This document shows positions 10,545-63,756 of a stretch of DNA of 64,000 nt, piece after piece. The stretch lies in the NCBI GenBank assembly GCA_964035545.1, contig OZ037765.1, positions 33,913,504-33,977,503 of the forward strand. Direction: 5' to 3'. Every line of letters starts with the position of its first letter. The stretch's first letter is position 1. The translations under genes were made by a program, and so were the position numbers. Origin of the DNA: Bugula neritina. Lineage: Eukaryota > Animalia > Bryozoa. Below the pieces are notes generated by a model. The model did no database searches and had not been told where the DNA came from. It saw nothing but the letters and a program-made list of their open reading frames with translations.

Positions 10545-13500
10545 CTAGTGAATAAAATATACAGTTCTATATAGAATGTAGAAAAGAATGCTAGGTAATT
10601 TCACATGAGCATCTTATTGGGCAATTGGTGAAGGTGGACAGTTACTCCTAACTCTCTATTGCATGTGAAGGCTTTCATCTTATTGACATGACATTATAAA
10701 AGGCAATTTCCATAGCCTAGTTGGCAACCTCAGAAATCAGTACTAGGTTCTTATATGTAAGTGTTCTTAACCAGAATAAGCAACAAATATAAATTATATA
10801 TCAATACTTTCATACAGAAATATTAAAGATTAATAAATGCACTTTCCATGTTGAATGATAATGTCAATTGTTAATTGTCAATAACATTGTTAATAAATTT
10901 ATATAAGTTTTAAAGTGTTGATATAATTAAGAAAAGTGTCTGTGGTCTTTTCATAAACTGCTTTGGTAAACATCACAAAAATATATAGAGGCCTAGATAA
11001 TTATTTAAAGATATGGCAGAATTTTTCACATAAAAATATAGGTATGTTTTATAGTTTCACTGTTTCATCCGTTAACCTAATATAATATTCGCATCTTAGT
11101 AAGCATTGCCTTTATAGACCATATCCTAACTGCACACACTGCAAATAGTCAGTTTATAGCCTGCTAGCCTATTATAGCTGGGCAGAAAACAATACTCAAC
11201 TAATAATTGAATGAGATTTGGCATTATCTACATTATGAGGAATAAAAATGGTTGAGTTCGCTAACATAATCCAGCTAGATTTACTAACATAACTGCCCAA
11301 AGAGAAACCTTGAACAATATAGTAGTGCATATGGGACAAGTAGAACAGCTCAGCCAACCAACACTCCACAACAACTAGTGGAGTTGAGTCACCACTCAAT
11401 GCAAAGTTACACTTTCTACTGATAGCTGGTCTAAAGTTATGTTTAAACCTCTGCTGAAAAAAGTGCCGAATTTCAGTTAATAACACTTGTCCTAGTACCC
11501 CTTTATAGTCAAACTGAAACTCGGTGAAATCATATTGATGCAGAAAATTAATTTCTAAAAGTGAAATCTGACTCGCCTAATCGCTATTTGATGCCCTTTG
11601 AAAACATAGTGAATTAGTAAAGTTGACAGCATAATAGCAATAATTGAGAAGGAGTAAATAATTATCAACATATAAGCACATCATCTAATCGACAAAGTCA
11701 TAATTAAGGAGTTATTACTCATTTTTCACTATTATTCTGAACTATGCCGATTAAGTTATCGCAGTACAAAAATTTTGACGAATGGCTAATTTTACAATGC
11801 AATGCAACTCGGGGAAATTTCAACTCTACCAAATTGAATTTCTGACTGAAATTCGTGAAGGTATAAGTGCAACTTTAGATCAGATAGCTGTGACATAATA
11901 TATATCCTTAGAGTAAACAGGTATTAGTACTGTACACTCAGTAAGCTACAAACTCTGTAGCTGTCAACCAATAGAAATATTGTCTCCTTAACCAATGACA
12001 ATGCAAGTCACTTTCATAATTCAATCACAGCTAAACACAAACTGAAAAGTATACACTGAAACAACCGAATTGATCAGACATCATGAAAACTGCAATGATG
12101 CCAACTAGGCAACTGTAGTGTGATGAAAACTCAGGCACTCACTGTATTCAAGGCACTGACTGTACTAGTGTTACAAATAGCCCAGAGTGTTATTTGACAC
12201 TTGTTAATCTGGACAGTTAATAATGCGATACTCAACTAATGCCTAATTCTAATTTGCTGCCGACAATGGCATGATTGCAAGTGTTGCGCAACTATATAAT
12301 GTAGACTCTGTGCCCCCCAGACATGGATAGTAACGCTGCCTAGCATAGTCTAGATTAGTAGTTAGTTATACTTGCGTACTTTTTCTCTTCACGAAGTAAC
12401 TTTTATGTGAGGATTATTGTAATAAATAAACTAACGGAGTATACACTCAAGTGGATTATAATATCTCAGCATGCTCTAACTCTCATGCACAAAGAGTACA
12501 TGTTCGAGCAGTAATTTTCAAATACCCACAACCCAATTTATACTGCAGTATAAATCCACAACAGTGGTAGCAGCGATGAGATAGTTTGAAATAGATACTC
12601 TCCATAAGAGAGGAAGAGACTAGAGCATGGCTGGTGAAGACGACAGAGAGACAGCTTGTCCGGAGCCAGTAGAATACAAACAACACAATTTATACTGCAG
12701 TATAAATTTACAACTGTAAAATCCTTTGCTATGTATACAGACAGTTGCTGAGTTACTGATAAGATATATATATTACAGTATCATTCTACACTATAATATA
12801 TTACACACCTGTTTGGTAGATGTGACAGTAGACAGTCCTCCATGTTCAACACTCCCAATGATAGTAAGGATGTGAATATATTGTCAGGTAGATTTCCACG
12901 TAGGTTATTCTTTGATATATTCAATACCTTAAGATTCTTCAGTGAAGACATGCTGTAACATAACATACAGGCATGTACTCATGTGTCATTATCAGCATAT
13001 AATATACATAAATTCATAAGACTTGGTACATATTTATTAACCTAACTATTATAACATACAATACATCAACAGATGTAGTATTATTATAGCCTGAGTTTTT
13101 AAAGATTTGATTAGAAAAAAGATAACTCTAATAAACAAAGAAAGTAGTTTCTTATGCAGCTGACAATTTGTAGACTAAGAACTGACTAAGTTGAAAAGTC
13201 AGTTAGCCAGCGTTTTTAGTAAAGTTTTAAATAAATTGAAATTTCAACCACGATCCTCAGCAAGTGTTATCTGTAGAAACCTTTGCTATGTATGTAGATA
13301 GTTGCTGAGTTACTGATGAGCTATTATATATATTACAGTATCATTCTATGCTATAATATAATACACACCTGTTTGGTAGAGTTGGTAGTTTACAGCGGGT
13401 CATGTCCAACTCTCTCAATGATAGTAAGGATGTGAATATATTGTCAGGTAGACCATCAGATAAGTTATTCTCCCACATCTCCAATACCTCAAGATTCTTC

Positions 13501-62400: not shown

Positions 62401-63756
62401 TAGCTAGCAGTATGAATAGTCACTAAATACTAGCTAGCAGTATGAATAGTCACTAAATACTAGCTAGCAGTATGAATAGTCACTAAATACTAACTAACAG
62501 TATGAATAGTCACTAAATACTAGTTAGCAGTATGAATAGTCACTAAATATTAGCCAGCAGTATGAATAGTCACTAAATACTAGCTAGCAGTATGAATAGT
62601 CACTAAATACTAGCTGGTAGCATAAATAGGTGAGAGTACTCTGTGTAGTACATATTCCTCTCACTTGTTTATAACATTTTATTGGCAATATATTTACATG
62701 TTATATTTATTACAGTATCATTCTACACTACAATATAATACACACCTGTTTGGTAAAGTTGACAGTTTACAGTTCTCCATGCTCAACTCTCTCAATGATA
62801 GTAAGGATGTGAATATATTGTCAGGTAGACCTTCAGATAGGTTATTATCTGATATATTCAATACCTCAAGATTCTTCAGTGAAGATATGCTGTAACATAA
62901 CATACAGGTTATAATAAAAACAAAACAAAACAAAACATGAAAACTGCAATATGCATATACAGCCTGTGTTTCTTGAATGTTTCTATGAAGGTATTAGAAA
63001 CCACACCCTTATCTAGCCATGTTACAGAAAGAACTTTGACTAATATAAAACAAGTCACTCTGTCTACCAGAAGAAGAGATATATAATTCACAATGGTTTG
63101 TGAATATCATTATAAAAACTGAGTGCCCATATAGCAAATTATTTCACAATTTGTAGCCTCAGCATACAAAGCTGGAGTAGTGACTGAATTTTAGAAAGTT
63201 AACATGACTCTGTAATTCTGGCATCTAACCTTTAGACAACCTTGGGTATAACAGTAGTATAGGTAGTTGTGGTATGACAATGTGGGTTAGATTAGAGGGA
63301 AGATAACTCTAATATACAGAAGTAGTTTCTTATATAGTCTAAACACTAGCAAGTCATAGACTGAGAACTAAACAGACAGGAAGATCAGTCAGTAAGAACA
63401 ACTGAGTTACCAATAAGATAGTATATATATATACTACTACGGTAAATTGATTATGGGATATTATATATTTAGTTACCAATAAGATAGCATGTATGCTAAT
63501 ATGATAAAGTAATTATGCATAATTAATTTATCATAGTATAGCATATATATCATATGGGATATTATACATATATTTATCCTGGAAATATTCTACACTATAA
63601 TATAATACACACCTGTTTGGTAGAGTTGACAGTTTACAGTCCCTCATGTTCAACTTTCTCAATGATAGTAAGGATGTGAATATATTGTCAGGTAGATCTT
63701 CATATAGGTTATTCTCTAATATATTCAACACCTCAAGATTCTCCAGTGAAGATATG
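50298..63756 (-). CDS. Gene A: spliced LRR-Roc-COR-caspase (Roco-caspase fusion); 5' end outside window; one 4-bp frameshift, so possibly a null allele or recent pseudogene
   Basis: Thirteen GT-AG exons with compatible phases: 63756-63613, 62889-62746, 61321-61178, 60456-60313, 59241-59098, 55379-53373, 53204-53112, 52980-52790, 52503-52333, 52232-52010, 51286-51113, 51008-50899, 50444-50298. Motifs: LRRs, P-loop GNTMAGKTS, DMGGQ, THKD, caspase MTHG / ETCSG / KLYLFPG. Confidence 0.85.
50899..51008 (-). CDS. Gene A caspase p10 exon
   Basis: ttgtag|CA...CAG|gtaggt; SFISKRHPVYGSLMIRAL...DLYTIFKQ (equivalent to SWR..GSWFIQ). Confidence 0.88.
51113..51286 (-). CDS. Gene A caspase intersubunit linker / p10 start
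   Basis: tcacag|AG...GAGT|gtaagt, phase 1-1; ...RLNYDDLLVVKSSME resembles the D-F-L-x-x-x-S-T strand of p10. Confidence 0.8.
52010..52232 (-). CDS. Gene A caspase p20 exon 2 with catalytic His/Cys
   Basis: ttatag|GAA...GGAG|gtaaaa; VLVIMTHG (His) and MAGKPKVVILETCSG (Cys, equivalent to QACxG). Confidence 0.92.
52333..52503 (-). CDS. Gene A caspase p20 exon 1
   Basis: ttcag|GTG...GAG|gtaggt; VFTMTRKRGRALIINNMNF...RKGSDVDVENM...FHVVTHTDLKAE, the canonical start of a caspase large subunit. Confidence 0.9.
52790..52980 (-). CDS. Gene A linker exon 2 (191 nt, phase 1-0)
   Basis: ttgcag|TT...AAG|gtgatc; open acidic linker ...DLSDLSDEDENLLPDRKEVEKMKF...TDK. Confidence 0.75.
53112..53204 (-). CDS. 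Gene A linker exon 1 (93 nt, phase 1-1)
   Basis: gtatag|GT...CCTG|gtaact; open frame CQTLSDREIGMLTEFVKDLKVRRAQKISALP. Confidence 0.75.
53373..55379 (-). CDS. Gene A large exon: last LRRs + Roc GTPase + COR domain (4-bp insertion at 55306-55309)
   Basis: Acceptor ttaacag|C (phase 2), donor CCAT|gtaagt (phase 1). Roco-typical [23 protein letters not shown]-cap, G1 GNTMAGKTS, G2 ETT, G3 DMGGQEVY, G4 THKD, COR-like motifs (LPLVW, YMHDCGKVLWY, FIVP). Matches the 679-aa ORF 53266-55305. Confidence 0.92.
55890..56679. mobile_element. Non-autonomous DNA transposon, possibly Academ-like
   Basis: Imperfect TIRs TAGTCTGGCAGAA / TTCTGCCACACCA plus internal inverted GGATAAAGTTTTTT; GTA flanking duplication; absent from the paralogous gene B intron. 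Confidence 0.55.
57199..57451. mobile_element. MITE with the same GGGCCACAC termini
   Basis: TA|GGGCCACAC...GTGTGGCCC|TA; absent from the paralogous intron near 12050. Confidence 0.7.
57500..58997. repeat. Same 30-bp minisatellite, split by the hAT insertion
   Basis: Tandem units on both sides of 57633-58798. Confidence 0.93.
57633..58798. mobile_element. Non-autonomous hAT element inserted in the 30-bp satellite
   Basis: TIR CAGGGTTGGGG, perfect 8-bp TSD GTTAGCAG, subterminal TAATTG repeats. Confidence 0.9.
59098..59241 (-). CDS. Gene A LRR cassette exon (144 nt, phase 2-2)
   Basis: Same splice sites; [47 protein letters not shown]. Confidence 0.9.
60313..60456 (-). CDS. Gene A LRR cassette exon (144 nt, phase 2-2)
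   Basis: Same splice sites; [47 protein letters not shown]. Confidence 0.9.
61178..61321 (-). CDS. Gene A LRR cassette exon (144 nt, phase 2-2)
   Basis: Same splice sites; [47 protein letters not shown]. Confidence 0.9.
61649..61883. mobile_element. Old hAT-type MITE
   Basis: CAGAGGTGGGCAAC...GTTGCCCACTCTTG with a degenerate 8-bp TSD. Confidence 0.5.
62259..62628. repeat. Same 30-bp minisatellite, about 12 copies
   Basis: Tandem units. Confidence 0.93.
62746..62889 (-). CDS. Gene A LRR cassette exon (144 nt, phase 2-2)
   Basis: Same splice sites; [47 protein letters not shown]. Confidence 0.9.
63613..63756 (-). CDS. Gene A LRR cassette exon (144 nt, 2 LRRs, phase 2-2)
   Basis: ttacag|C...CAAACAG|gtgtgt; [47 protein letters not shown]. 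Confidence 0.9.

Follow-up and report, generated by a model that had tools for sequence, protein, structure and literature searches.

Introduction

The leucine-rich repeat (LRR)-ROCO genes of brown algae form a clustered, expanded family in which each 72-nucleotide (nt), phase-2 exon encodes one LRR, concave-face positions are under positive selection, and the protein ends at the COR domain; splice variants are documented in Ectocarpus (Zambounis et al. 2012, Teng et al. 2024; PMC3341825, PMC11378527). Here, we describe a gene family of the bryozoan Bugula neritina that works like these exon-shuffled genes but is not a member of the algal family. The analysis starts from a 64,000-nt stretch of the genome (assembly GCA_964035545.1, contig OZ037765.1, positions 33,913,504 to 33,977,503; hereafter the window), which contains parts of two members, named gene A and gene B. 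The bryozoan and algal genes share the order of LRR, Roc, and COR (probable in the bryozoan), clustered expansion, symmetric phase-2 LRR exons of equal length, and positive selection on the concave face. They differ in that the bryozoan exons encode two LRRs in 144 nt, the protein continues into a caspase, and the host is an animal.

Bacteria have LRR-AP-GTPase-COR proteins with caspase effectors, for which a counter-invader role has been predicted (Kaur et al. 2021, PMC8195603). Like the bryozoan proteins, they combine fast-evolving N-terminal LRRs, a Roc/AP-GTPase, a COR domain, and a variable C-terminal effector, which can be a caspase, but they are prokaryotic and intronless, whereas the bryozoan genes are spliced and built from cassette exons. 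Plant and animal NLRs resemble the family in joining an LRR sensor, a nucleotide switch and a death effector, and in their clustered birth-and-death evolution with unequal exchange. In the bryozoan family, in contrast, the switch is a Roc-COR GTPase instead of NACHT or NB-ARC, the LRRs are N-terminal, and the protease is fused to the same chain. The variable lymphocyte receptors (VLRs) of lampreys and hagfish also vary on the concave LRR face, but they are extracellular proteins whose incomplete gene is filled somatically with non-exonic donor cassettes, whereas the bryozoan genes are complete in the germline, with spliced cassettes and cytoplasmic domains. Animal ROCO proteins of the MFHAS1/MASL1 type have the same LRR-Roc-COR order, and MFHAS1 is a single conserved gene without a caspase or a cassette array. 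Our literature search, whose coverage excluded most subscription journals, found no paper on a bryozoan or animal Roco-caspase family.

A family of LRR-Roc-COR-caspase genes with cassette exons

The genes of the family consist of a first exon, two to ten two-LRR cassettes, an exon with the LRR cap, Roc and COR, and a caspase. The window contains nine cassette exons, all on the minus strand, 144 nt long and in phase 2 at both ends, with acceptors ending in ttacag and donors of the form AG/gtgtgt. Each encodes two LRRs in 47 codons plus one split codon. The sequence-only reading of the window had described these exons and their splice context correctly, and its residue lists are exact: the two residues before the Cys differ in all nine copies, and the two before the Asn take eight states, with LE occurring twice. 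The 12-letter protein framework that it considered nearly fixed is found in eight of the nine copies; gene B cassette 1 does not conform to it and carries an Ile where the others have the Met. The cassettes are approximately 78-88% identical in DNA to gene B cassette 4, and a real 20-nt cassette word has 157 matches in the genome, as against 0 for a reversed control pattern; the likeness of the nine exons is thus not due to chance.

The nine exons had been regarded as one set of interchangeable units, which does not hold, as gene A contains five of them and gene B the other four. The Roc-COR and caspase exons of gene A, its stop codon, and the ATG exon of gene B are located between the two groups. 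A single nine-cassette array is ruled out by this stop codon, the second ATG exon, and the 36 kb that separate the groups. Both genes are damaged in the assembly, and ordinary splicing cannot combine exons of the two with each other. The host is an LRR-ROCO gene, as had been guessed by analogy, but its C-terminal caspase had been overlooked.

The 216-Mb genome contains at least 150 close cassette copies in approximately 29 genes, located in a cluster of about 1.2 Mb (C1 33.8-35.0 Mb) and elsewhere. At the protein level there are 769 cassette candidates, and none of the 150 scored matches contains a stop. Roc-COR exons number at least 65, of which 28 are at least 75% identical, and the first exon has 57 matches. 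Detailed sequence reading covered about 260 kb of the cluster and small loci. The genes read directly have 4, 5, 5, 4, 9, 3, 8, and 2 cassettes, and coordinates imply at least 10 in another gene.

The nearest named relatives are from the bryozoan Watersipora subatra and are named MFHAS1 homologs by NCBI. The gene of XP_067936773.1 contains seven 144-nt phase-2 exons, six of them closely alike, in the same LRR register and followed by Roc. In OY755161.1, a caspase gene model begins 37 nt after the end of the LRR-Roc gene; NCBI annotates two genes, which are probably one split gene. The Watersipora cassettes are more alike among themselves than those of Bugula, as concerted evolution predicts. 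A homolog search with the LRR region returned only generic LRR proteins.

Selection on the binding face

About nine binding-face codons of the cassette are selected for amino-acid change, while stops and indels are removed. We compared 62 cassette copies, all of which are 144 nt long and unique, without a single stop or indel; approximately 30 stops would be expected if their 573 differences from the consensus were random. Codons 14, 38, and 39 show 11-12 different residues each, and seven Leu/Cys positions are invariant. In a site-wise comparison, a kind of test that the sequence-only reading had proposed, model M2a is preferred over M1a (2dL = 350), with omega of about 12 at codons 11, 14, 16, 20, 34, 36, 38, 39, and 41, and it remains significantly better in each half of the cassette separately.

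Several points weigh against taking these values at face value. M1a and M2a were our own implementation with a fixed tree shape, site models overcall selection under recombination, silent diversity beside the hot codons is raised (0.12 versus 0.04), and about 40% of the close copies were read. Because recombination inflates site-model tests, we added a tree-free test on 13 independent cassette pairs whose homologous introns are approximately 4% apart. Codons assigned a priori to the concave face (xxLxLxx) differ at 19.7% of bases, and the other codons at 4.0%; the same pairs differ by 92 replacement and 14 silent codons. In the duplicated segment of gene A, where cassettes 5 and 6 are compared with 7 and 8, 25 of the 288 exon bases are different, compared with 22 of 719 in the intron (p = 0.0004). 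Neutral homogenization is ruled out by gene-conversion simulations matched for diversity, none of which (0 of 42) reaches the observed pattern: the concave-to-other ratio is 4.25, as against a simulated maximum of 1.9, and the residues per site reach 12, as against 7. The site-wise, pairwise, and simulated results all support diversifying selection.

Local hypermutation or conversion hot spots could create variable patches without selection. The silent diversity of the structural codons between the hot codons is indeed three times that of the rest, and many hot-codon differences involve multi-base changes, but raised linked silent diversity is also expected next to sites under diversifying selection. 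Moreover, the variation alternates codon by codon in the register of a β-strand, with invariant Leu and Cys interleaved, and most of it falls on first and second codon positions. Among copies that carry the commonest hot-codon residue, silent diversity is 0.07, whereas pN is 0.3-0.6. We consider hot spots without selection a very improbable cause of the pattern, and retain selection for amino-acid change.

The predicted fold of a natural Watersipora arm (pLDDT 84) has β-strands at cassette positions 10-14 and 34-38, so that the selected codons are positioned on the strand face and in the following loop. The cassette also matches the VLR structure 2o6q by sequence (E = 1e-12), as it does many LRR proteins. 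The fold and the structure matches bear out the earlier placement of the variable residues on the concave face and extend it to the loop after the strand.

Exchange of cassettes within and between genes

Cassettes do not cluster by gene, as their distance is 0.099 within genes and 0.102 between genes (p = 0.25). An origin mainly by duplication within genes is rejected, since the nearest neighbor is in the same gene for just 13 of the 62 cassettes. One- and two-cassette tandem duplications did take place: gene A cassettes 7 and 8 are a tandem duplicate of 5 and 6, and the intron classes record two-cassette duplications in gene A. One unit of exon plus flanks is third in paralogue g2, fourth in g3, and ninth in gene A, and upstream and downstream intron classes are recombined among cassettes. 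The distance between exons is nearly independent of their flanks, with 11.6 nt when both flanks are shared and 12.3 nt when neither is. Identical 18-nt variable tracts occur in cassettes with unrelated flanks, linkage among variable codons is limited to neighbors and does not extend across the two LRRs, and the exon is the sole homology common to all copies. We infer from this that cassettes are exchanged by unequal crossing over and in short conversion tracts, with probable breakpoints in or beside the exon.

Exchange inside the exon is the part of this interpretation against which some results count. A PHI-type recombination test on the cassettes is not significant (p = 0.86), and the trend for linkage to weaken with distance is marginal (Spearman p = 0.052); the case is therefore based on the uncoupling of flanks and the shared tracts, and recurrent mutation at saturated sites could explain part of that signal. 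The exon shuffling that had been proposed stands insofar as genes differ in their number of cassettes (2 to at least 10) and exchange cassettes with one another, but whole-exon movement is accompanied by exchange within the exon.

Exchange also involves the effector end of the genes. The caspases form two clades that are approximately 42% identical, with ETCSG in gene A and QACSG or HACSG in the second clade, which also has SHG. Members of both clades follow Roc-COR exons with 80-83% identity, and trees built from the 5′ half of that exon conflict, with strong support, with those from its 3′ half. Whole genes are thus mosaics, and effectors seem to have been swapped between paralogues. The caspase-clade loci are at 50298-52503 of the window and at C1:33821905-33823547, C1:34000193-34003132, and C1:34238836-34240303.

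A dispersed member on C3 has a six-cassette array that is collinear with that of a sample approximately 10% diverged, and another gene of the diverged sample has no orthologue in this genome. Judged by these two loci, the cluster appears to turn over more rapidly than isolated loci do. The JGI contigs come from a diverged lineage, with best identities of 85-91%; L034 and L035 are 99.99% identical and probably have one source.

Taken together, the comparisons point to diversity arising in the germline, by duplication, unequal exchange, and gene conversion acting partly inside exons. Somatic assembly or conversion of cassettes within single cells or zooids, in the manner of VLRs, would have at least 150 potential donors with one framework to draw on, within about 1.2 Mb and elsewhere, the patchwork tracts indicate that conversion acts on cassette exons, and a clonal colony could retain useful variants. 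Nevertheless, all cassettes read are on the strand of their gene, have intact splice sites, and are located upstream of a cap or Roc exon; nowhere in the 259 kb read does an incomplete germline gene occur with donor pseudo-cassettes around it; and the collinear C3 array counts against somatic change as well. We regard somatic assembly as extremely improbable, and germline diversification as the better account of the family.

Genes of the family undergo birth and death, and both window genes are damaged. Paralogue g1 (C1:33829064-33833173) has no upstream first-exon match, and C1:34351077-34352570 contains a first exon and two cassettes but no Roc match before the next gene; both are likely to be further gene fragments. 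In paralogue g7, the exon of the caspase small subunit contains an in-frame stop (C1:34240190-34240303). A second large cluster, at C6:2.5-6.3 Mb, has more distant Roc-COR exons (63-67% identity) and no close cassette match.

Structure of genes A and B

Gene A has the LRR-Roc-COR-caspase layout, but four extra bases shift its frame (Table 1). It has nine cassettes, five of them in the window; the other four and the ATG exon lie past the window end. Each exon of the spliced model was checked by reference, and the large, linker, and caspase exons have continuous phase and GT-AG ends. The Roc domain matches Pfam PF08477 (E = 2.5e-7, 31.4 bits, cutoff 27) and has the P-loop, DxGG, and HKD motifs; the Roc motifs (P-loop, G3/G4) are present in five paralogues. 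A profile search with the GTPase returned Roc-type families only, and neither NACHT nor NB-ARC. Directly after Roc there is a weak COR-A match (E = 0.003, 17.8 bits, below the cutoff of 35.3). Relatives have PF16095 matches, and bacterial Roco proteins align weakly; this segment is likely a divergent COR domain. The caspase matches Peptidase_C14 (PF00656, E = 2.4e-10) and contains a THGG His-Gly motif and the Cys motif ETCSG, which departs from QACRG. The 4-nt insertion shifts the frame and leads to a stop 29 codons into the large exon; no other lesion was found in gene A. Most family contigs of RNA type at this position lack the four bases.

The last exon of gene B is interrupted by a deletion junction, past which the DNA corresponds to sequence that flanks paralogues g1 and g6 on their 3′ side; Roc, COR, and the caspase are thus deleted. 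Splicing to a distant Roc exon is rejected, as there is no Roc, COR, or caspase match downstream and the DNA after the junction is the g1/g6 3′ flank. Gene B could encode an LRR-only protein of approximately 342 amino acids. With its stop in the last known exon, gene B might evade decay and serve as a decoy. LRR-only products are predicted from both window genes, through the deletion in gene B and through the frameshift just before Roc in gene A.

Table 1. Positions of the exons, the insertion, and the repeats discussed in the text, numbered from the first base of the window.
Feature	Position	Strand	Remark
Gene A cassette 5 of 9 (two LRRs, phase 2-2)	63613-63756	minus	
Gene A cassette 6	62746-62889	minus	
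Gene A cassette 7	61178-61321	minus	
Gene A cassette 8	60313-60456	minus	RNA-type contigs on the exon
Gene A cassette 9	59098-59241	minus	junctions between cassettes, and between first exon and cassette, in RNA-type family contigs
Four extra bases in gene A	55306-55309	minus	absent from all paralogues read
Gene A large exon: last LRRs, LRR cap, Roc GTPase, COR	53373-55379	minus	
Gene A linker exons	53112-53204 and 52790-52980	minus	GT-AG ends, continuous phase
Gene A caspase, five exons	52333-52503, 52010-52232, 51113-51286, 50899-51008, 50298-50444	minus	
Gene B first coding exon	24324-24496	minus	ATG, N-terminal cap, ends in phase 2
30-nt minisatellite	22867-24100		first intron of gene B
Gene B cassette 1	22571-22714	minus	most divergent of the nine
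Gypsy-type LTR retrotransposon	14833-22522	plus	intron between gene B cassettes 1 and 2
Gene B cassette 2	14382-14525	minus	
Gene B cassette 3	13369-13512	minus	
Gene B cassette 4	12809-12952	minus	
Gene B last exon	10265-10544	minus	LRRs and cap, deletion junction near 10274, stop

The 30-nt minisatellite is also present in the first introns of g2, g3, gene A, and g6; several cassette introns contain it too, with further stretches at 57494-57632, 58801-58997, and 62259-62629 of the window, and it could seed unequal exchange. The long terminal repeats (LTRs) of the Gypsy-type element inside gene B (14833-15144 and 22211-22522) are 97% alike, and its reading frames are broken. A second, more decayed Gypsy-type fragment is located upstream of gene B on the minus strand (25346-27900). 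A Harbinger-type DNA transposon at 32137-36328, with a broken DDE_Tnp_4 frame and inverted arms of about 1.1 kb, is inserted into a 2-kb repeat unit that occurs four times within 30300-47300.

Transcription and splicing

In three runs presumed to be RNA, reads pile up on the cassette exons, and unique introns have almost no coverage. Contigs from these runs cross cassette-cassette and first-exon-cassette junctions, the latter with a family version of the gene B first exon. Their likeness of approximately 88% identifies them as transcripts of the family and not of gene A specifically. The junction words are the same for all cassettes, so that short-read contigs cannot resolve which cassette is joined to which, and skipping would not be visible in them. 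By default, transcripts probably contain every cassette in order.

The germline diversity could be multiplied by frequent in-frame skipping of cassettes, which would yield many isoforms per gene (up to 2^9 ordered subsets in gene A). Symmetric cassettes with near-identical splice sites would keep the frame, and brown-algal ROCO genes do have splice variants of LRR exons (PMC11378527). However, no skip joint is assignable in the contigs, given the identical junction words, the annotated Watersipora models contain the cassettes in order, and the uniformly strong splice sites suggest constitutive inclusion. Frequent skipping is thus possible but doubtful. The Watersipora annotation was rejected as a source of isoform evidence, because the cluster held a paralogue and not isoforms. 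That intact members yield many sensor variants per individual, through skipping or, less likely, somatic conversion, and so form a combinatorial intracellular LRR repertoire wired to a caspase, appears unlikely.

Proposed mechanism

We consider it likely that the family encodes germline-diversified cytoplasmic proteins in which a sensor, a switch, and a caspase act in sequence. The symmetric phase lets cassettes be gained or lost in frame, and exchange between genes and inside the exon uncouples the exon from its flanking introns and keeps the framework uniform. In the cytoplasm, the LRR arm would bind a foreign or non-self ligand that changes rapidly; the Roc-COR unit would respond by a change in its nucleotide-dependent dimer state, and this change would bring the attached caspases together and activate them. 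Initiator caspases are activated by proximity, and the protein would be a single-chain analogue of an NLR together with an initiator caspase. The role of Roc-COR as a nucleotide-dependent dimer switch follows the model reviewed in PMC4104024.

The selected partner could be self versus non-self in colony allorecognition, instead of a pathogen. Bryozoans show allo-incompatibility (PMC8195603), and in fungi, non-self cell death is under the control of NLR-like genes with shuffled repeats (PMC13449251). On the other hand, inspection by eye revealed no evident signal peptide or membrane segment in the exons read, and a dispersed family of tens of genes would fit pathogen sensing better than a single fusibility locus. 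We find allorecognition as the selecting force quite unlikely.

As both window genes are damaged, the value of the finding lies in the family. The family shows the exon-cassette LRR-ROCO strategy of brown algae in an animal, with a two-LRR unit and a fused caspase, and is kept in at least two bryozoan families. It would also offer a natural single-chain readout for the long-open question of what an LRRK2-like Roc-COR dimer cycle switches on, which is useful because the activation of caspases by dimerization is easy to assay. The literature searched holds no identified receptors of bryozoan immunity or allorecognition, and the family provides a concrete candidate for them.

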